A stretch of DNA of 63,470 bases, filler included, from Pelomyxa schiedti (Eukaryota; Protista; Evosea), in assembly GCA_020536535.1 (NCBI GenBank). It is 12 parts of 12 records of this genome, joined end to end, with 100 filler letters (N's around TTAATTAATTAA, not from the genome) between each part and the next. Parts side by side here need not be neighbours in the genome. Positions count along the whole stretch, not along the records: positions 29,571 to 41,910 come from JAHLWZ010000716.1; 11 more parts are not named here. One strand, 5' to 3'. How positions within the stretch are numbered: position 1 is the stretch's first letter; every line of letters begins with the position of its first letter. Positions 814-41,871 of this stretch are shown piece by piece. The position numbers and the translations under genes were made by a program. Below the pieces are notes generated by a model. It made no database searches, had not been told where the DNA came from, and saw only the letters and a list, made by a program, of their open reading frames with translations.

Positions 814-2469
814 ATGATCACAGCCAACATCAGCGACACTCACGACCGCGATGACGGGGACGACGACGGCGGCACACTGTCGTCGTCATCGTCATCACCC
901 TCCGCGGTGTCCCGGTCATCATCGTACTCCTACTCTTACTCCTCCTCGTCCCTCAGCGCAGCCACCGCCGTAGTAGATACGCAGGCCCAGGATCAAGCCG
1001 GCGATGGGGAAGCAGAACAAGCAACTACCGGCAGCGTGGTGGGGGGCACCAGTACCGGCAACACCACGGCTACCAGTAGTGGTGGTTGTGGTTCACGTGG
1101 AAGCGGGACGGCGGGGAGGGTGGTGGTGGTGAGGGGGGGTGGCAACAACAACAGGGTGTGCTGGACGTGGTGGGGAGGGGGGCGGAGCTGGTGCGGGTAC
1201 GCGGGAGGGGGGGCGTGTGTGACGGGGCACGGGGTGGTGGCATTCCTGTGCACTGTGTCTCTGCTGCTTGCTGTGCAGGTTGGCGTATCTGTAAGAATGT
1301 ATGCTACTGCTACTGTCCTGCCTGTTTCGGCTTTTCTTTTTTTTTCTTGGGACATTGACATCTTTAATTAATTATGCATATTCTAATATGGTGTTAATTT
1401 GATCAGATAATTGTATGCACTTATTGTGCTGTTATTAGGTGCTGTGATATTTGTAATTTTTTTTGGAGACACTTACAAAATATAGAAACACAAAAATAAA
1501 AAAAAATAAAAAGAATTCCTTGGATGATCATGCAATTGGAATCAAAAGTGAAATGGCTTGTTGTGATAGTGTTGGTTTTGTCTTTTCTGGCCGTTCAGAT
1601 CAGCGCGTTTTGGTGCCGATTCAGCAACCCTGGAATTGTACCTCGCTCTCCTTTCCCTCCACTCTCCAAACGTAAGAGTACGCTTGGAATCAGTGCACTG
1701 TTTAACCTTTTTTTCAGGAAAGAAAAAAATAAATGTGCACATCCTTGACTTCACGGCTACACTTAAATATTGCCGTACGTATTTTCTCAACACGAATACC
1801 ACAATAATTTACTTTCAGTTTAGGGACATGCAACATCTACAGGCCTCCAAGAGCAAGCCACTGTGCTGAATGCAACGTATGCGTTGAACGCTTTGATCAC
1901 CACTGCCCATGGTAAAATCACTCAATTTCACCTCACAAACTAAAACGCACTCCGAAGGCTTGGCAATTGCATTGGAAAAGGAAACTACAGGTTCTTTGTG
2001 AGCTTTCTTCTGAGCTCGTTCTTCTACTGTCTTCTCATACTTGTACTGTGCACTTGCATGCTGGTCAAGGCAAATCATGAATGCCGGGAACAAAAAGGCT
2101 GTTTTGAAAGTACTGAATGCTTCGTGTGCGTAGCAAAAACCACATCGGAATCGTTGATCATTCTCGCAATCGCTTTTGTGCTTTGGGGACTCATTTCCGC
2201 GCTCTGTGTTTACCACACGGTTCTTGGCTCTTGTGAATGCACCACAAACGAGGAGGTACTCAGAATCACCCCCATCGACTGGCAAACTAATAATTACCAC
2301 TCAGGTAAAAGATACCTTCAAGCACAAGAAGAATCCTTATTCAAAAGGGATTTTCCGGAACTTGTTTGCCCGTGCGTTCCCTCCAATGTACACATATTAT
2401 TCTTCAACAACTACTCCGCAACCCAAAACAACTTCTGAAAAAACACGGCTTCTCACAAGCAACGCATAA
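814..2469 (+). CDS. DHHC (zDHHC) palmitoyltransferase, multi-exon
   Basis: Spliced exons give NPGIVPR and [46 protein letters not shown], followed by TM segments, TTNE and NPYSKG. Confidence 0.9.
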
Positions 2470-29570: not shown

Positions 29571-30204
29571 CAGCACCTTCACCAAGTCGCCACTTCTCAT
29601 CTCACTTTGGTAATCACCCCCACCGCCCAGTGACAACAGTCCTGCTTCTTCTGGTGACGAATTTTCAACCTCCAACATCCCTGCCAAGCTGGTCACTGGG
29701 AATCGTGATCCACACACTGGGCACACCGCCGCCCATGACACTGACACCGCACCCCCGCCACTTGTTGTCATTGCTGCTGCTCTGGAATTGCTGTCAGTCA
29801 TGGGCACTTGTGCGTCAACTGCGGGCGTTGCACAGCCAACACCATCACGAGCCGCGGTGGTCACCGACGACGATGATGAAGGCGATGTGGTGACCGATGG
29901 CTCCGCTGTTGGCGTCGGCTGCTGTGTGTTGTTGGCGGCGGAGGCGGTTGGTGACACAGCTGCAATCGGGACAAGCTTGATGCATCCCAGGTTCACTCCG
30001 TGCAAGCACGGCAACAGCCTGTGTGGTGCATCGTGCGTGTGTATTATGTTGGTGAGGTACATTTGACAACACAATGCAACACAGACACACATACCTTGGG
30101 TCTGAATAAGGCATGGAGCAACATGGACATGTTGTCCTCCTGCCCCGATTGTTGTTGTTGCTTGTCACGCTTGTTGTTCCGCAACCTGTTGCTCCTGCGT
30201 CCAT
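29571..30204 (-). CDS. RING-finger (TRIM-like) protein N-terminus, partial; copy 1
   Basis: CPCCSMPYSDPR/LLPCLHGVNLGC, then a low-complexity insert, then CPVC. Confidence 0.6.
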
Positions 30205-30294
30205 TCTTCTTCAAACAAACCACACCACCACACGATTGGGATGGCCCGGTTGGTTTGGAACTTTTTGATTGATTTTAAAGGTTACGTGAAGAGG

Positions 30295-32171
30295 ATGATG
30301 ACGCAAGGTACGTTCAACCTGGTGGAATCGAGTTGTGGGTCATTCACCACGTGAGTGTCAATGTGCCACTGCGCTCCTCCCCTCTTTGCCTTATGTTGGT
30401 GTAAAAAAAAAACAACTACGAAGTACGAGGGATGCAGGGGCAGCGGAGCTCGTTATTGTTGGGACACAAGGAGGTGGATCACAGCCAGTTTTGAAGGCTG
30501 CAACTTGCCTGTTTTGGTGCGTTCCATGTTTGAAGAATTCACTCTCAATGGTTGCTGTTCTTTTCCCCCTTTTTTTCTCCCACTGAGAGGAAAAAAAAAA
30601 GACGGACCAACTTTTCTGGGTGTATTGAGGCCATCACCCCAGTACTTCAAGGAGTTTATATTGACACACGATTCTGTCATTCCAGCTTGTCCGCTATTGA
30701 GAATTCTGATAGATGTATGTTTGCATTCCCGCTCATTTGCCTACTAAAAAAGAAGTGTCATACTTCTTTTTTTTTCACCTTAGAAATGTAAAAACTTCCT
30801 GACTGCAGACCCTTCAAACAAAATACCAATGCTCAGGTTTGCCAGTGGGAAAAGTCAACCTAATCCCACATCCAGGTGTTGCATGTTTGTTAAAAATTGG
30901 TTGTCGATATGCCCTGAATCTTTGGTTCGAGGTGAGTCCGTTTCGTGACATTGTGTAATCTCACTCACTGCTTTCAAGTTGATTACTCCTTTCATTTGTT
31001 GCATCAACAATGGAAGAAATGTTCCATTCAAGTCTTGGCGTCACATTCACATCGACTTTCACACTGCTGTGTGCTCTCTTCTCTTCCAATGCACGTACTT
31101 GTTGATGTGGTGCTCTTCTCAAAACCGCGCCTTGAATCTCTTCTGCTGCTGAAAGATTTCATTGATACTATGCCTGAACAGACAAAGAGTGCACTTTCAG
31201 TGAGGTGAACAGGCACTCAAAAGCTCTCTCTCTCCGAATTCACGGTGAAAAAAGTTGCTCGAAATTGGTGATACCTCCCATCAGGGAACGCAATGAGATT
31301 ATGATACCACCGGGGATTCCTTCTCGAGCAGTATTTCCACTGTGTTCTGTGGATTCGTTTTGCGAACAACTGACACTGATGGAATCGAATTCAATGTCTT
31401 CAATTCAGGCTCCTGAATTTCTGTTGAAGAGGTGGGAAAACCAAACGCGGGATCTTGATGCGCCCAACATCACCAGGTGCATCAAGTGGTCTGACAGAGT
31501 TGTTCCTATCTTCATTCATGTGAATATTCTCTCACCTTGAATGACAGCTCTCCAATGCAGTTTTGGTGGAACTTCTATCAATGCACTCCCTTCAGGACAG
31601 AGTTGGTTTTCTGAGTTATATCCTTCAGGTCGCAGACCGGTTGCACAAGATAGGGAATTTCAGTTCCATAACTGCGATCTTAGCGGCAGTTCAACACAAA
31701 GCGGTTCAGAAATTGACTCGGACCTGGGGAGACCCCAATGTCACAATTAAACAACAACAATCCTCCTGATCTTACGTCCCAACAAGGTGAAACACTACTC
31801 TTTAGTTTTACCAAAATTAGAGTATGATGTGACCCACACTGCAGCTGCACATCGGTATTCTCACTATATCCCGTATATTGGCATGCACTGAACCGAGTTA
31901 ATGCGATTCTAATCCTCGAAAAGGGACTTACCTCACTGACCTGGGATACATCGATGAAGGAACGCCCACGACACTGCCAAATGGGCTGATCAACTGGGAG
32001 CATTATAAACTGGTTGCCATGGTGATAATGCACTTCCAGCAGTGGCAAGGATACCCAAGGTGCACATACGAACCAAACACAGACATTCAGTCCAGCATCA
32101 ACAAGTGGGTTTTCAGTCATCCACAAATCACACTCCCTCAGGCCCTTGCCATGTCCAGTGCTCGGGAATAA
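30295..32171 (+). CDS. RasGEF (REM + CDC25) paralog A, copy 1, with a 1-nt deletion near 30505
   Basis: FCEQLTLMES, IQAPEFL, APNITR, GNFSSITAILAAVQHKAVQKLTRTW, IPYI/GTYLTDL and GLINW. Confidence 0.75.
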
Positions 32172-32414
32172 TCGTAAAAAACCAAACCACCCTAGCACAA
32201 CCACAACACCCCATAACATCCAAACAGGTTCGACTTCTGTTTGGCAGACAAATATCCGTACTAGTCATTTGATTGCTCTAGGACCACCCAGCAAAAAAAA
32301 AGGAAATGAAAATAAGAAAGGTAACGGTGCTACACCAACCCTTCCGCAATTCGATTGCACCCATAATTCGTAGTGCCCGAAAAATAAGGACAGTTCCGGA
32401 ACTGTTGCTATCGG

Positions 32415-32512
32415 GGATTGGTGAGGTTGAGTGTGGCCGGATAAGTGGCCATTTGGTTGTCCCTAGGTTCTTCCTCACTGATTGGCCCAAGTTAACGTGT
32501 AGTCCTTTTTTT
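32415..32512 (+). ncRNA. Candidate ~90-nt structured RNA (duplicate of 35803-35898)
   Basis: ACCCATAA at 32359, a GUGAGG/CCUCAC closing stem and a downstream T-run. Confidence 0.4.
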
Positions 32513-32945
32513 TTGTTCTTATTTTTTTTTGTAACCGCTAGCCACTCATAGTCACGAGTGTTACACCAAGTGCAGGTGAAGATGATGATGACGTACAACC
32601 TGGTGGAATCGAGTTGTGAATCATTCACCACGTGAGTATGCCACTGCGCTCCTTACCCATCACTCATTTTGCGTGCGCCTAAAAAACACCCAAAAGTACG
32701 GGGGATGCAGGGGCAGCGGAGCTCGTTATTTTTGGGACACAAGGAGGTGGACTGGAGCCAGTTTTGAAGGCTGCAACTTTGCCCGTTTTGGTTCGCTCTC
32801 TATTTGAAGAATTCACTCTCAATGGTTGCTGGTCCTTCCCTACTCNNNNNNNNNNNNNNNNNNNNNNNNNNNNNNNNNNNNNNNNNNNNNNNNNNNNNNN
32901 NNNNNNNNNNNNNNNNNNNNNNNNNNNNNNNNNNNNNNNNNNNNN

Positions 32946-33594
32946 CAGCACCTTCACCAAGTCGCCACTTCTCATCTCACTTTGGTAATCACCCCCACCG
33001 CCCAGTGACAACAGTCCTGCTTCTTCTGGTGACGAATTTTCAACCTCCAACATCCCTGCCAAGCTGTTCACTGGGAATCGTGAGCCACACACTGGGCACA
33101 CCGCCGCCCATGACACTGACACCGCACCCCCGCCACTTGTTGTCATTGCTGCTGCTGCTCTGGGGTTGCTGTCAGTCATGGGCACTTGTGCGTCAACTGC
33201 GGCCGTTGCACAGCCAACACCATCACGAGCCGCGGTGGTCACCGACGACGACGACGATGATGATGAAGGCGATGTGGTGACCGATGGCTCCGCTGTTGGC
33301 GTCGGCTGCTGTGTGTTGTTGTTGTTGGCGGCGGAGGCGGTCGATGACACAGATGCAATTCGGACAAGCTTGATGCATCCCAGGTTCACTCCGTGCAAGC
33401 ACGGCAACAGCCTGTGTGGTGCATCGTGCGTGTGTGTTATGTTGGTGAGGTACATTTGACAACACAATGCAACACAGACACACATACCTTGGGTCTGAAT
33501 AAGGCATGGAGCAACATGGACATGTTGTCCTCCTGCCCCGATTGTTGTTGCTTGTCACGCTTGTTGTTCCACAACCTGTTGCTCCTGCGTCCAT
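32946..33594 (-). CDS. RING-finger protein N-terminus, partial; copy 2
   Basis: Near-identical to 29571-30204. Confidence 0.6.
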
Positions 33595-33682
33595 TCTTCT
33601 TCAAACAAACCACACCACCATGATTGGGATGGCCCGGCTGGTTTGTAACTTTTTGATTGATTTGAAAGGTTACGTGAAGAGG

Positions 33683-35558
33683 ATGACGCAAGGTACGTTC
33701 AACCTGGTGGAATCGAGTTGTGGGTCATTCACCACGTGAGTGTCAATGTGCCACTGCGCTCCTCCCCTCTTTGCCTTACGTTGGTGTAAAAAAAAAAACA
33801 ACTACGAAGTACGAGGGATGCAGGGGCAGCGGAGCTCGTTATTTTTGGGACACAAGGAGGTGGATCACAGCCAGTTTTGAAGGCTGCAACTTTGCCCGTT
33901 TTGGTGCGTTCCATGTTTGAAGAATTCACTCTCAATGGTTGCTGTTCTTTTCCCCCTTTTTTCTCCCACTGAGAGGAAAAAAAAAAAGACGGACCAACTT
34001 TTCTGGGTGTATTGAGGCCATCACCCCAGTACTTCAAGGAGTTTATATTGACACACGATTCTGTCATTCCAGCTTGTCCGCTATTGAGAATTCTGATAGA
34101 TGTATGTTTGCATTCCCGCTCATTTGCCTACTAAAAAAGAAGTGTCATACTTCTTTTTTTTTCACCTTAGAAATGTAAAAACTTCCTGACTGCAGACCCT
34201 TCAAACAAAATACCAATGCTCAGGTTTGCCAGTGGGAAAAGTCAACCTAATCCCACATCCAGGTGTTGCATGTTTGTTAAAAATTGGTTGTCGATATGCC
34301 CTGAATCTTTGGTTCGAGGTGAGTCCGTTTCGTGACATTGTGTAATCTCACTCACTGCTTTCAAGTTGATTACTCCTTTCATTTGTTGCATCAACAATGG
34401 AAGAAATGTTCCATTCAAGTCTTGGCGTCACATTCACATCGACTTTCACACTGCTGTGTGCTCTCTTCTCTTCCAATGCACGTACTTGTTGATGTGGTGC
34501 TCTTCTCAAAACCGCGCCTTGAATCTCTTCTGCTGCTGAAAGATTTCATTGATACTATGCCTGAACAGACAAAGAGTGCACTTTCAGTGAGGTGAACAGG
34601 CACTCAAAAGCTCTCTCTCTCCGAATTCACGGTGAAAAAAGTTGCTCGAAATTGGTGATACCTCCCATCAGGGAACGCAATGAGATTATGATACCACCGG
34701 GGATTCCTTCTCGAGCAGTATTTCCACTGTGTTCTGTGGATTCGTTTTGCGAACAACTGACACTGATGGAATCGAATTCAATGTCTTCAATTCAGGCTCC
34801 TGAATTTCTGTTGAAGAGGTGGGAAAACCAAACGCGGGATCTTGATGCGCCCAACATCACCAGGTGCATCAAGTGGTCTGACAGAGTTGTTCCTATCTTC
34901 ATTCATGTGAATATTCTCTCACCTTGAATGACAGCTCTCCAATGCAGTTTTGGTGGAACTTCTATCAATGCACTCCCTTCAGGACAGAGTTGGTTTTCTG
35001 AGTTATATCCTTCAGGTCGCAGACCGGTTGCACAAGATAGGGAATTTCAGTTCCATAACTGCGATCTTAGCGGCAGTTCAACACAAAGCGGTTCAGAAAT
35101 TGACTCGGACCTGGGGAGACCCCAATGTCACAATTAAACAACAACAATCCTCCTGATCTTACGTCCCAACAAGGTGAAACACTACTCTTTAGTTTTACCA
35201 AAATTAGAGTATGATGTGACCCACACTGCAGCTGCACATCGGTATTCTCACTATATCCCGTATATTGGCATGCACTGAACCGAGTTAATGCGATTCTAAT
35301 CCTCGAAAAGGGACTTACCTCACTGACCTGGGATACATCGATGAAGGAACGCCCACGACACTGCCAAATGGGCTGATCAACTGGGAGCATTATAAACTGG
35401 TTGCCATGGTGATAATGCACTTCCAGCAGTGGCAAGGATACCCAAGGTGCACATACGAACCAAACACAGACATTCAGTCCAGCATCAACAAGTGGGTTTT
35501 CAGTCATCCACAAATCACACTCCCTCAGGCCCTTGCCATGTCCAGTGCTCGGGAATAA
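33683..35558 (+). CDS. RasGEF paralog A, copy 2 (frame intact at the REM motif)
   Basis: VLKAATLPVLVRSMFEEF plus the same CDC25 motifs as copy 1. Confidence 0.8.
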
Positions 35559-35802
35559 TCGTAAAAAACCAAACCACCCTAACACAACCACAACACCCAT
35601 AACATCCAAACAGGTTCGACTTCTGTTTGGCAGACAAATATCCGTACTAGTCATTTGATTGCACAAGGACCACCCAGCAAAAAAAAAGGAAATGAAAATA
35701 AGAAAGGTAATGAATGGTGCTACACCCACCCTTCCGCAATTCAATTGCACCCATAATTCGTAGTTGCCGAAAAATAAGGACAGTTCCGGAACTGTTGCTA
35801 TC

Positions 35803-35898
35803 GGGGATTAGTGAGGTTGAGTGTGGCCGGATAAGTGGCCATTTGGTTGTCCCTAGGTTCTTCCTCACTGATTGGCCCAAGTTAACTCCTTTTTTTTG
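35803..35898 (+). ncRNA. Candidate ~90-nt structured RNA between the RasGEF paralogs
   Basis: ACCCATAA at 35749, closing stem AUUAGUGAGG/CCUCACUGAU, inner UGGCC/GGCCA hairpin and a terminal T-run. Confidence 0.45.
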
Positions 35899-35964
35899 TT
35901 CTTATTTTTTTTTGTAACCGCTAGCCACTAATAGTCACGAGTGTTACACCAAGTGCAGGTGAAG

Positions 35965-37848
35965 ATGATGACGTACAACCTGGTGGAATCGAGTTGTGGA
36001 TCATTCACCACGTGAGTATGCGCTCCTTACCCATCACTCATTTTGCGTGCGCCTAAAAAACACCCAAAAGTACGGGGGATGCAGGGGCAGCAGAGCTTGT
36101 TATTTTTGGGACACAAGGAGGTGGACTGGAGCCAGTTTTGAAGGCTGCAACTTTGCCCGTTTTGGTTCGCTCTCTATTTGAAGAATTCACTCTCAATGGT
36201 TGCTGGTCCTTCCCTACTCACTGACTGAGGGAAAAAAGACGGAACAATTTTTTTGGGTAATTTGAGGCCATCCCCGCAATTCTACAAGGCATTTATATTG
36301 ATACATGATTCTGTCATTACAGCTTGTCCGTTATTGAGGATTCTTTTAGACGTAAGTATACTTAATCACAAGCTTGTGAATGTCATACTTTTCTTAGAAA
36401 TGTAAAAGCACCCCAACAGCAACTCCTGGAACAAAGACACCTCTAATCAGGTTTGACAGTTGCAAAGTCAACTTAATCACACATCCAGGTGTTGCATGTT
36501 TGTTAAAAATTGGTTGTCAATATGCCCTGAGTCTTTAATGAGAGGTTGGTCCGTTTTGGCACAGTCTGATATCTCATTGCTTTTTAGGGGATCCTTTGTT
36601 GCATCAACAGTGGAAGCAATGTTCCATTCAAGTCTTGGCGTCACATTCACATCGACTTTCACACTGTTGTGTGCTCTCTTCTCTTCCAATGCACATACTC
36701 GTTGATGTGGTCCTCTACTCGAAACCGCGCCTTGAATCTCTTCTGCTGCTGAAAGATTTCATTTATGCTGTGACTATTCCTGAAAAGATGAAGAATGCAC
36801 TTTCAGAGAGGTGAACTGGCACCCAAAAGCTCTCTCTCTTCGAATTCACAGTGAAAAAAGTTGCTCGAAATTGGTGATACCTCCCATCAGGGCACGCAAT
36901 GAGACGATACCACCGGGGATTCCTTCTCGAGCAGTATTTCCACTGTGTTCTGTGGATTCGTTTTGCGAACAACTGACACTGATGGAATCGAATTCAATGT
37001 CTTCCATTCAGGCTCCTGAATTTCTGTTGAAGAGGTGGGAAACCGAAACGCGGTGTTTTGATGCACCCAACATCACCAAGCACATGGAGTGGTCTCAGAG
37101 GGTTGTTCCAGTCGTCATTAATGTGAATATTCTCTCACCTTGAATGACAGCTCTCCAATGCAGTTTTGGTGGAACTTCTATCAACTCACTCCCTTCAGGA
37201 TAGAGTTGGTTTTCTGAGTTATATTCTTCAGGTTGCTGACCGGCTGCACCAAATTGGAAATTTCAGTTCGGCAACCTCAATTTGGGCTGCAGTCCAACAC
37301 GAAGCGGTTCAGAGATTAAGTCGGACTTGGGGAGACCCAAATGTCACATTTAAACAACAACAATCCTTATCTTACATCCTCCCAAGGTGAAACGCTACTC
37401 CTCAGTTTTGCGGGTTTTGGAATCTGAGCTGAAGCTTTACCGCACCGCAGTTGCATTTCGGCATTTTCAGTACATCCCATACCTTGGTATAATTACTACA
37501 AACCCCCAAAGTAACAAACAACAATCTCCGAAGTGATTCATTGACCCATAAATTTGACAATTATCCAACAACATTCATAAATCCCTCACCTTTCTGTCAG
37601 GTGGTTACCTCACTGACCTCAAATTTATTGAGAATGGAATTCCCGCAGCACTACCAACAGGGCTGATCAACTGGGAGCATTATAAATCAGTTGCTGCAGT
37701 AATAATGGACTTCCAACAGTGGCAAGGAAGTCCGAAGTACACATATGTGCCAAACACAGACATTCAGTCCAGTATCAACAAATGGGTTTTCAGTCATCCA
37801 CAAATCACAATCCCTCAGGCCCTTGCCATGTCCAGTGCTCGGGAATAA
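35965..37848 (+). CDS. RasGEF paralog B
   Basis: Same exon layout as paralog A. GNFSSATSIWAAVQ, IPYLG/GYLTDLKFIENG and GLINWEHY. Confidence 0.8.
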
Positions 37849-37890
37849 TAATAATGTGAGAAACTTCTCCTTTTTTTTTTCTTTGTTATT

Positions 37891-38055
37891 GGGGGTGGAG
37901 TTGCGAATTTCGCAGACCCCAGCTTCACAAAAATAGTGTACTAGATATCCCCTTGCGGAGACTCATACCGACACCTCTCCCCAGAGTGCAAGAGAAAAGG
38001 TGTTGATACACAAGACACCCTTGTTGATCAGTGCCTGTGAGTACCAGGTAAGTAT
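37891..38055 (-). ncRNA. U1: U1 spliceosomal snRNA, canonical 5' end
   Basis: Reverse complement reads ATACTTACCTG, helix H GTACT/AGTAC, SL1 loop GATCAACAAG, SL2 loop TTGCACTC, SL3 with GCAA loop, Sm site ATTTTTG and SL4. About 165 nt. Confidence 0.95.
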
Positions 38056-38106
38056 GAGGATTCGAATTCCGAAAAGGAGGCGTTCAACGCCCACAATTTT
38101 TCGTTT

Positions 38107-38139
38107 GACAATTATGGGTTGCCGCGACCCATAACTGTC
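38107..38139. promoter_or_regulatory. Bidirectional snRNA promoter made of two inverted DUSE-like elements (ACCCATAA)
   Basis: GACAATTATGGGTTG-ccg-CGACCCATAACTGTC (13/15 inverted repeat). ACCCATAA begins 64 nt (minus) and 63 nt (plus) upstream of the two U1 starts. Confidence 0.8.
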
Positions 38140-38189
38140 GCTGGTGCTCAGGGGCAATTTCTGCGCCGGTGCATTCAGGAATAGAACTC

Positions 38190-38348
38190 ATACATACCTG
38201 ACTGTGCACACTGTTGATCAGGAAGGACTGGTGTGCTGTGGTGGGTTCTGACTTTGCACTCATGTCAGAGACCACGATATGGATCCCGCAAGGGAGCCCA
38301 GCAGTGTAATTTTTGTTTAGAAGGAGCTTTGCGTTTTGCGCAACTCCT
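38190..38348 (+). ncRNA. U1: Variant U1 snRNA with 5' end AUACAUACCUG (complementary to GUAUGU donors)
   Basis: ATACATACCTG, helix H ACTG/CAGT, SL1 GCACAC/GTGTGC with loop GATCAGGAAG, SL2 TTCTGAC/GTCAGAG with loop TTTGCACTCAT, SL3 TCCC-GCAA-GGGA, Sm site AATTTTTG and SL4 AGGAG/CTCCT. Confidence 0.92.
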
Positions 38349-38380
38349 CACAAGTAAAATGCAAACACAATTCGAACAAG

Positions 38381-39942
38381 CTATTCACAGTCCTCGAGAG
38401 GGGGAAGGTCAGGGGGAATCGGCACTAGGGATTTGGTTGTTATTGCTGCTGCTGTTGTGGGATGCTGAGGTGTGCGGCTGTGTGATAGGGATACAGCCAA
38501 TCCTGTTGTTGTTGATGTGCCACGTGCTGTGGGATTATGAAGTACCCCTTGTGTTGATGATGCTGGTGTTGGGACTGGTGTAAAGTGAACCTAGAGGTGG
38601 AGAAAAAGTGGGTTAATTGTGGTTCGTGGTTAAGTGATTATGTTGTTGGAAAACCTTTGGAAGAGTGAGTAGCAAGTGACCGGTGGTTTGTGACCTCTCT
38701 GCTTTTCCTTTGCCGGGTGATATTTCCTAACAATAGAGGTTGGTATTTCACGGTTAGTTTGTGTTTTCTGCTGTTTAATTGCCTCAGGTAGGTTCAGTTG
38801 AAGGACTTTTTTCTTGGCAGTGATCCGCACGTATCTTAAAAACCTTTGTTAATTGTACGGAAAGTGGCAACAGTATACTTGCTTTGGCTGACAGTCCACA
38901 GATATCAAAGAAGTATCCATGTATTTCTCAAACGCTACATCCAACAACAGACAATTGCCAGCTGGATTACTTCCTAGTGTGAATTGCCACCTGCCCTGGT
39001 TCATCTGTACAATGCTCCCATCTGGCCTGAAGGTGATTGCCGGTGGTTCGGATGGGTGTGGTGGAGGGTTTCGTTTCAATCTTTTTTAGTTACGTGAATT
39101 AAACTTGCCACTGAAGGGTAAGGCATACTCCACTTCATTTTGTATTTGTTCTAAATGTAGGTGTAAAGTTTTCCTACTCTCAGGAGTATCACCTGATCTA
39201 GGAAACTAAGTCAAAAAAAATTAACAACATGCACACCGCAGAGGTTCTGCATTACAAGAGGATTCTGTACTGCAGAGAATTGAATCGATCGATGCCGTAC
39301 TCTGTGAGGCGAGTATCCTTTCTGAGGGTGTAATTTCGATACCGTCTATTTCCTTCAATCCATTTTCTTAGAAGCGTTTTTCTTCATGTTGGCATACCAC
39401 GAGTTGTGGTAAACAAGAAATAATGAAGTTTCTATAGTACGGAAGCTGTGTGCAAGGATTTCCTATGAGAAATCTTTTCCGGAATTACGTGTTGCGATAA
39501 AGATACTACGGACATACAACTGCCTCAAATTGTGATTTCCTTTCAGAGAGGAGAGGCACTTTATATCCGCGATAAAATTTGCAGTCAAGTCGAGTTTCCT
39601 TAGCGACTCACACCCCTCCAAGTTCTCCACCAAAGTAATGTTATTCAGTGCCAAATTCAAGTAGTTTAGTTCCTTCAACCTATGCAAATTCTCTGCTCAC
39701 CCCATCAGCTCCCACAGAAAAAAAAATCAAAAGAAGAAGTTGTGGCCACCATGACCAAGAAACAAACCCAATTTTGGTATGACGTTGTCCTGCAACAATA
39801 GCACTCTGAGACGTGGACACATTTGCCCCAAAACGCCATCAATGCCCTCAATGTGAAGTTGGTGCAATGCGATTTCTTGCAGATTCGACAACTCCTCGTT
39901 GTCCCCTGCCTGTCTACGTAATAATTCCCCCGTTATCCTCAT
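38381..39942 (-). CDS. LRRC6: Dynein axonemal assembly factor LRRC6/DNAAF11 (TilB), multi-exon
   Basis: MRITGELLRRQAGDNEELSNLQEIALHQ, LKELNYLNLALNNI, GCESLRKLDLTANFI, GNPC, NQGRWQF, KYMDTSLISVDCQP, KVLQLNLP and C-terminal DLPPLE. Confidence 0.88.
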
Positions 39943-40373
39943 TCGCGTGTCTCCTCGCTGTTTGATTTCTGTGAAGCGTTCTTCGGTGAAGAGAACAGAA
40001 AAACCCTTGAAGAGACAACACATGCGAACTTCAGTTGTTGTGGAACTACAATTGGAAGCACTTGAGGGAAACACAATTTTTTGCAAGGATGTGAATAAGA
40101 AAATTGCTATTCCTACTGAAAAAAAAAGGAACAGCAAACAGTCCTCAATCGTTCAGGATGTGAGCTGTGTGAGTTTGGCTTGCACAGCAGGTAAGGCCGT
40201 GTTGAATTGGGCCAGAACTCCAGTGAGGAAAGTGACATTTACTTTGGTCANNNNNNNNNNNNNNNNNNNNNNNNNNNNNNNNNNNNNNNNNNNNNNNNNN
40301 NNNNNNNNNNNNNNNNNNNNNNNNNNNNNNNNNNNNNNNNNNNNNNNNNNAACAGCAAACAGTCCTCAATCGT

Positions 40374-41871
40374 TCAGGATGTGAGCTGTGTGAGTTTGGC
40401 TTGCACAGCAGGTAAGGCCGTGTTGAATTGGGCCAGAACTCCAGTGAGGAAAGTGACATTTACTTTGGTCATTCCGTAGCGTGACTGTGTGTCAATGCCC
40501 CAGCTCATTCCGGCTATCAGTTGGTCTATTTTCGCGGACATTGTGGAGTACACTGCAGCTATTTTGGCATCATTCAGTGATTGGCATAGTTCCTAGAAGG
40601 GTTCCGTTACAAAAGGATTTTGTACCTGTGCAAGCACTTTCAATTTAGGGTGCATACTTGGATTCCCATTAGCATTCCTATCCATACATAACGTAATAAA
40701 TTTTTGCCAAAGTCAAATCCAGTTGCTTCAAGTATGCACTTGCGCACAACATTCAGTTCATTTATGGGCTCTAAGTCAGTGTCCACAGGGAGTGTAGTGA
40801 TTATTTGCAGGAACCCCTGAACTCTGCTTATCTGTGAAAGAAATTAGAGTGTAAAAAGTGTTTTGGAGGACAACATATTTAGCAAAATTATCTGGAAACT
40901 GGACAGGATCGATGGAGCATATTGCGTTATCAATTGCGTAGCCTCTTCCAGATACAATAAATAGGTTGCCCATGTTACCCGCATTGTCCCATATTACGGG
41001 GAACCTGTCACTGTTGTTAACCAGAACATCGTAACTGCAAATAGAACCTGAATTTGTTTTCGTTAGGTACAATTGAAATTGATAGAGGATGTACCAAAAT
41101 CGGTGCAAATTTGAATTAGGCTTTCCGGTGTGAAAGAAATTAGGTTGGAGCTCTCCAGATCCGACCCCTTCAAGTACTGCATTACAGTTATGATGGGCTT
41201 GGTTAGGAACTTATCCAGCTTGGCCTTTTTGAGTACTTCCAGTGGATTCGTCATGACGTCATACTCGGAATCCAGCTGATAAAACACAAGCCTAACAAAC
41301 AAACCATTAAACACTCAAATCAATAACAAATCCACCCATACTCAAACCAAAAGATATAAAATAACATTATAAACACAAGCTAAAACTAGTATAGAAATAG
41401 AAATATTATATCACCATCAGATAGCACCACGCACGCACGCGCACACACGCACACACCTCTGCCTGGGCATTGGGATGCAAGTAGCGGCCTCGGCCAGCAT
41501 ATAAGCCAGGTGGTCAGCGGCCACGGTCAGCGACGCCTTGAGCACGACGACGCCCTCGTCGGGGAACCGGACGAACCACACGCCCTCGGAGCCGGTCGCG
41601 CTGCACACGCAGTCGGTCAGCTGCCCCCATCGAGTGCTAACTGATTCGACGTCGGCTGACACAGACGTGGCTGCTCGTGGCTTCCACTACACATGTACGG
41701 TCGGTCAGTCAGTCAATCCAGTGAGTGTTGGTTTTTGGTGGGGATTGGGTTTGAAAACCACACCTCTACGGCAGGGGCAGTATCGACGGTTGCCCATTTT
41801 TTCCTGGTTGCGGGAGGCTTGGCACCTGGGGGGGCTGATGTAGCTGGGGGTGGAGGTGGGGGTGCTGACAT
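40374..41871 (-). CDS. Actin-fragmin-kinase-like atypical kinase, multi-exon
   Basis: TGSEGVWFV...VVVLKAS, VMQYLKG and YDVLVNNSDRFPVIWDNAGNMGNLF...AIDN. Confidence 0.75.

Follow-up and report, generated by a model that had tools for sequence, protein, structure and literature searches.

Two diverged, head-to-head U1 snRNA genes with different donor-pairing 5′ ends in Pelomyxa schiedti

The window, i.e., the whole stretch of 63,470 nucleotides (filler included) of Pelomyxa schiedti DNA, contains two U1 snRNA genes, U1a (37894–38055, minus strand) and U1b (38190–38349, plus strand), which are arranged head to head and separated by a spacer of 134 nt. Both were recovered at full length (model positions 1–166) by the Rfam U1 model RF00003, with scores of 70.2 bits (E-value 5e-16) for U1a and 74.0 bits (E-value 4e-17) for U1b, above the gathering score of 69.5 in each case. 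This search, proposed as a check in the earlier note, bears out its claim of two complete, divergent U1 folds 134 bp apart. Moreover, no other model of the Rfam clan matches U1a or U1b better than U1 does, and the 5′ ends are of the U1 type, so that an identity as U11 snRNA was rejected.

The donor-pairing 5′ ends, delimited by the Rfam match and by donor pairing, lie at 38045–38055 (minus strand) in U1a and at 38190–38200 (plus strand) in U1b; they are single-stranded and each is complementary to one donor class in the flanking genes. They differ at nucleotide 5, which faces intron position +4 (PMC10581693): it is the canonical U in U1a but an A in U1b (38194, plus strand), for which reason we refer to U1b as the variant and to U1a as the standard gene. 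The U1-70K loop, the U1A loop, the SL3 tetraloop and the Sm site, all previously claimed for both genes, are present in the two folds, as is SL4. In the constrained folds, loop I (U1-70K site) is found at 38020–38029 in U1a (minus strand) and at 38216–38225 in U1b (plus strand), and loop II (U1A site) at 37983–37991 (minus strand) and 38254–38264 (plus strand), respectively. The Sm sites, located from the Rfam match and the fold, correspond to 37928–37934 (U1a, minus strand) and 38308–38315 (U1b, plus strand). For both genes, folds constrained to the four-way junction (helix H and SL1–3) lie within ~2 kcal/mol of the free minimum, and the folding z-scores of the pair are −2.5 and −2.7.

When segments are anchored on structure, U1a and U1b are 60% identical overall, with single-stranded motifs at 78% and stems at 53%, against 38 ± 4% for shuffled stems. 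SL3 and SL4 remain 66–71% identical and SL2 is far apart in sequence, while full turnover is limited to helix H and the 5′ strand of SL2. In helix H, none of the eight bases is common to the two genes, yet all four pairs are kept, the pattern expected if an ancient duplication was followed by purifying selection on the structure; likewise, the protein-binding loops and the helices are all kept despite ~40% sequence change. The earlier description of stems that are almost unrelated but still pair in every helix is thus right about the pairing and exaggerated about the sequences. A covariation count on a MAFFT alignment of six U1s was dropped, as helices were misplaced in the alignment.

The spacer is centred on a palindrome (38107–38139; inverted repeat I7, 16-nt arms, 88%) in which the 8-mer ACCCATAA occurs twice, back to back, each copy being extended by five more near-identical bases. 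One copy stands at −64 of U1a (38112–38119, minus strand) and the other at −63 of U1b (38127–38134, plus strand), which fits both the consensus and the distance of the Dictyostelium upstream sequence element (DUSE), located ~63 bp upstream of the start (PMC3188802), whereas the 8-mer occurs only four times elsewhere in the piece (24.7 kb, both strands). In dictyostelids, a DUSE at such a distance predicts expression, and its occurrence outside Dictyostelia would be unexpected according to the same study (PMC7919456). With one element per gene, the locus has two promoters rather than a shared one, so that co-regulation, which had been asserted for the pair, is possible but not implied; reads also point to further U1 copies elsewhere. 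A run of five U stops polymerase III, and the one in each Sm site would do so here, which argues for transcription by polymerase II. The DUSE 8-mer is also observed at 37544–37564, in the last intron of the neighbouring RasGEF gene, together with a 12-nt exact copy (D12) of part of the U1 spacer; no RNA gene was found behind it by Rfam and this occurrence is possibly due to chance.

The A at 38194 is the same in contigs (not raw reads) of two DNA runs and in two haplotypes, as the earlier note would have it, these runs (X1 and X2) coming from one sample of one study and being perhaps the source data of the assembly. The X1 contig shows no difference over 38015–38316 at a depth of 110. The X2 contig, which represents the second haplotype, has seven differences and four gaps over 38024–40200, none of them listed at 38194; those listed near the U1 pair are at 38066 and 38104 (both in spacer sequence that is not part of the promoter elements), at 38345, where one base is inserted in the SL4 stem, and downstream. 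Among the differences listed, none affects either promoter element, the U1b 5′ end or the U1b loops. Contigs from two single-cell RNA runs cover neither U1 gene, and since this includes the standard U1a, the gap over U1b is uninformative. When contig depths are summed, the U1 genes reach about double the value of the flanks, and loose contig ends at 38058 and 38280 suggest further U1a-like and U1b-like copies elsewhere. The extra U1a-like copy has a different upstream region according to the contigs, and the extra U1b-like copy seems to be devoid of the SL3 hairpin and to have a shorter Sm run (joint 38213–38291).

Two protein-coding genes converge by their 3′ ends on the pair. On the U1a side lies a RasGEF gene with nine introns (35965–37848, plus strand; Pfam PF00617, paralog KAH3731382.1), while the U1b side is occupied by an LRRC6/DNAAF11 (TilB)-like gene with eight introns (38381–39942, minus strand), delineated by domain and exon searches and by its introns; an actin-fragmin kinase gene with four introns follows at 40480–41700 (minus strand). 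The homolog of LRRC6/DNAAF11, an axonemal dynein assembly factor, is intact; the flagella of Pelomyxa are poorly motile. The RasGEF gene is the third of three tandem copies (29571–37850), of which copies 1 and 2 belong to a 3.3 kb repeat (97.5% identical) and flank a 100-N gap, possibly as haplotypes assembled twice, and copy 3 is 83% identical. An exact repeat of 121 bp across an N gap (40130–40250 and 40351–40471) is probably an unmerged scaffold overlap. Searched against 1.8 billion representatives, the neighbouring RasGEF exon had KAH3731382.1 of P. schiedti as its best match (85% identical) and no other strong match, and a search for further Pelomyxa RasGEF paralogs returned only P0241.

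With ~7 short introns each and the presence of GC-AG introns, the local genes agree with the published P. schiedti genome, which has 7.43 introns per gene and 1.59% GC-AG introns; the single-cell origin of the runs agrees with it as well. Three GC-AG introns were observed in ~12 kb, at 38882 and 38782 (minus strand), both in the LRRC6-like gene, and at 31881 (plus strand). The first is supported by RNA, while the last has U at +4 and its counterpart in RasGEF copy 3 is a GT intron. Two introns with very weak donors (37102–37150 and 38727–38782) are retained in RNA contigs in which neighbouring introns are spliced, possibly reflecting slow splicing.

To relate the two 5′ ends to donor sites, we relied on 21 introns of the three flanking genes. 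For RasGEF, eight of nine intron positions agree with those in the paralog's NCBI model, and four introns are seen as joints in RNA contigs; the remainder were placed by reading frame and by likeness to family motifs. Donor-like 6-mer counts without annotation were discarded as too noisy. The donors are loose, as previously claimed, with all four bases at +4 (U: 10; A: 6; G: 4; C: 1) and U at +3 in 7 of 21. U is thus the commonest base at +4 among these local donors and both U1s have matching targets, even though the proportion of donors with A or U (16/21) is not above the A+T-rich background (p ~0.1). Computed in register, pairing energies favour U1b at nine donors and U1a at five, and are equal at seven. 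Where the two differ, the gap is ~4 kcal/mol; this value is too high, since the calculation takes no account of pseudouridylation at U1 positions 5 and 6, by which a U-U mismatch is softened. Two of the donors cited in the earlier note, those that lie in the piece holding the pair (GTATGT at 30715 and GTAAGT at 36352), are real and turn out to be one intron position in two paralogous RasGEF genes (copies 1 and 3, respectively), which indicates that +4U and +4A donors interconvert. Seven donors with U at +3 (36199, 36545, 37102, 40874, 39767, 36451 and 38654) match neither U1; Pelomyxa may possibly have a further U1 that, like that of Entamoeba, is altered at nucleotide 6.

Variants at nucleotide 5 were also searched for in metagenomes, using a pattern that combined a base other than U at this position with the two protein loops, all other positions of the 5′ end being fixed; the pattern is therefore blind to variants at other positions and to standard (U5) copies in organism B, one of the two organisms described below. 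It retrieved 10 loci, all of which match U1 in Rfam. There was no match in viral contigs, and a match in a genome contig, from a Bacteroidales MAG, was rejected as due to chance, having no Rfam U1 match. Most loci belong to two organisms, B and C, both probably amoebozoan. Organism B (55% GC), whose nearest named cap-methyltransferase matches are Thecamoeba and Clastostelium, has A5 U1s (L001, L002, L008 and L009) and G5 U1s (L003, L005 and L010) that are 73% identical and were found together in three samples; from this co-occurrence, GC content, promoter likeness and intron repeats, we infer that they share one genome. On L003, the G5 U1 (1638–1803, plus strand) is head to head with a tRNA-Glu gene (1407–1479, minus strand) at a distance of 158 bp. 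In organism C, a G5 and a U5 U1 (70% identical) stand in tandem on L007 (124–281 and 617–774). A separate case is L004 (3717–3882), an animal-like repeat of U1, U2 and histone stem-loop; it contains a near-consensus U1 copy with A5 and no DUSE, and an apparently broken fragment of histone H4 between genes.

Donors were read by hand in these organisms as well. Organism B has C at +4 in ~12 of ~14 donors, U in two and A in none, whereas the five donors of organism C have C (3) or A (2). Compared with Pelomyxa (1/21), C at +4 is enriched in carriers of a G5 U1 (8/11; Fisher p ~1e-4), for hand-picked donors from three genomes only. Each of the four U1 genes of organisms B and C (on L001, L003 and L007) has a DUSE-like element upstream, at −63 to −66, and the DUSE-type promoter hence appears, as judged from these motifs, to be conserved across Amoebozoa, beyond Dictyostelia. 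In a tree based on 166 columns, the two U1s of organism B group together (97/93), those of Pelomyxa do so on long branches (80/85), and those of organism C emerge as successive branches at an open fork. This weakly suggests that the pairs of Pelomyxa, B and C are independent duplications.

In our opinion, the U1 pair of Pelomyxa is probably best explained by two RNAs that both form ordinary U1 snRNPs and have overlapping preferences, U1b strengthening weak +4U donors and U1a +4A donors. Each gene, driven by a DUSE-type element of its own, would be transcribed, probably by RNA polymerase II, and its product packed into an ordinary U1 snRNP. U1a would then pair best with +4A donors and U1b with +4U donors, the locally commoner class, and each U1 would use its class preferentially. 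Together, they would widen the set of weak short-intron donors given a good U1 helix, with overlapping specificities and no separate spliceosome. U1b itself would be the product of a duplication, and would then have become adapted to donors in which +4 had drifted to U. The compensation seen in the helices, a promoter in register for each gene and the presence of fitting donors close by lend good support to the earlier note as regards two conserved, probably functional U1s with different best donors. The covariation of U1 and donors in Entamoeba and Mastigamoeba also counts for donor-matched U1s, as do the U1 pairs of organisms B and C with the donors that fit them. Regarding the previous suggestion that the pair “splits or broadens” donor recognition, broadening is the better term and splitting does not hold, since pairing is equally good with either U1 at 7 of 21 donors and the standard U1 of yeasts copes with +4U.

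A strict division, in which U1a would serve +4A donors (including GC donors) and U1b +4U donors as near-exclusive and separately regulable intron classes, seems unlikely to us. It would account for donors falling mostly in two +4 classes separated by ~4 kcal/mol where pairing differs, and the wide difference in SL2 could recruit different factors, but a third of the donors pair equally with both U1s and 5 of 21 (G or C at +4) match neither. Moreover, both classes are mixed within single genes, an intron shared by two paralogs differs between them at +4 (U or A) and, although the two GC donors of the LRRC6-like gene (2/2) have A at +4, the one at 31881 does not. We find it doubtful that nucleotide 5 is near-neutral, i.e., that U1b is expressed while +4 is set later by pairing with U6 (METTL16/m6A), relaxed selection having allowed the U1 end to drift in amoebozoans. 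In Saccharomycotina, the +4 A/U switch does track METTL16 and not U1, and +4U donors of yeasts function with an invariant U1 (PMC10581693); donors are very loose here, and nucleotide 5 is U, A or G in different amoebozoans. However, six 5′ ends vary at nucleotide 5 alone (which is partly built in, as the pattern fixed the other positions), each nucleotide 5 complements a common +4 base of its organism, and C, which the pattern permitted, was never found. Finally, it is very improbable that U1b is a pseudogene or its A an assembly error: U1b is without RNA contig coverage, and decaying copies may exist, as the U1b-like copy elsewhere seems to be without SL3, but the A is found in two runs and two haplotypes, U1b scores above U1a in Rfam, its helices are compensated and its promoter is intact and in register.

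We would tentatively extend the idea to Amoebozoa, which may have repeatedly evolved sets of paralogous U1s differing at nucleotide 5 and sharing major-class introns by their +4 base, with duplication allowing a stepwise rewriting of the donor consensus. Pelomyxa (U5 + A5) would be a retained intermediate on the way to the state of Entamoeba and Mastigamoeba, and organisms B (A5 + G5) and C (G5 + U5) would be independent repeats. It is puzzling why yeasts, Giardia and Trichomonas kept the standard U1 end despite +4U donors, and also how an essential RNA-RNA pairing can change. An old and a new U1 side by side, with separable promoters and distinguishable sequences, illustrate a route by duplication. 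The Pelomyxa pair also makes it testable whether natural U1 paralogs pick different introns, while recurrence in at least three amoebozoan-like genomes, along with DUSE outside Dictyostelia, offers a ready comparative set.

Compared with known systems, U1a and U1b share all domains of the standard U1 (RF00003), from which U1b departs at nucleotide 5, a position that shows no variation among 236 U1s of yeasts and outgroups (PMC10581693). Like the human vU1s and U11, the Pelomyxa U1s are paralogous donor-recognising snRNAs within one genome. Human vU1s are recent copies, mostly of low abundance. U11 characterises a distinct spliceosome with its own class of introns, whereas U1b is classified as U1 by Rfam and has ordinary donors of the major class as its targets. 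Regarding promoters, the DUSE-driven snRNA genes of Dictyostelium resemble the Pelomyxa pair in having the 8-mer at about −63, but Pelomyxa lies outside Dictyostelia. Paired snRNA genes occur in Dictyostelium too.

The closest parallels are found in other amoebozoans. The heterogeneity of U1 in Physarum polycephalum is reportedly the subject of an older structural paper. According to a preprint (bioRxiv 10.1101/2022.06.08.495308), an A5 U1 exists in this species, standard and modified variants coexist (a one-sentence remark, with no data there) and +4U is the commonest donor class. Physarum, a myxogastrid, would thus have an A5 and a standard U1 like Pelomyxa, an archamoeba, but neither head-to-head linkage nor deep divergence, which are features of the Pelomyxa pair, is part of its description in the text consulted. 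The same text reports a single A5+A6 U1 in Entamoeba and a G5 U1 in Mastigamoeba balamuthi, the 5′ end being altered to complement the donor. Given these three cases, both an altered nucleotide 5 and the coexistence of two forms have precedents, and the novelty initially claimed for the pair was overrated. In the literature, of which our coverage is incomplete, we found no description of a variant U1 in Pelomyxa, of a linked and deeply diverged pair, of G5-containing pairs or of a DUSE in Archamoebae. The Entamoeba U1 has an A-rich upstream region, in contrast to the DUSE of the Pelomyxa U1s. Finally, according to the preprint, Entamoeba and Mastigamoeba, which are Archamoebae like Pelomyxa, have one U1 type per species, whereas Pelomyxa keeps the standard U1 beside the variant; judging from the sequences, this retention of a standard and an A5 U1 would be new among Archamoebae.
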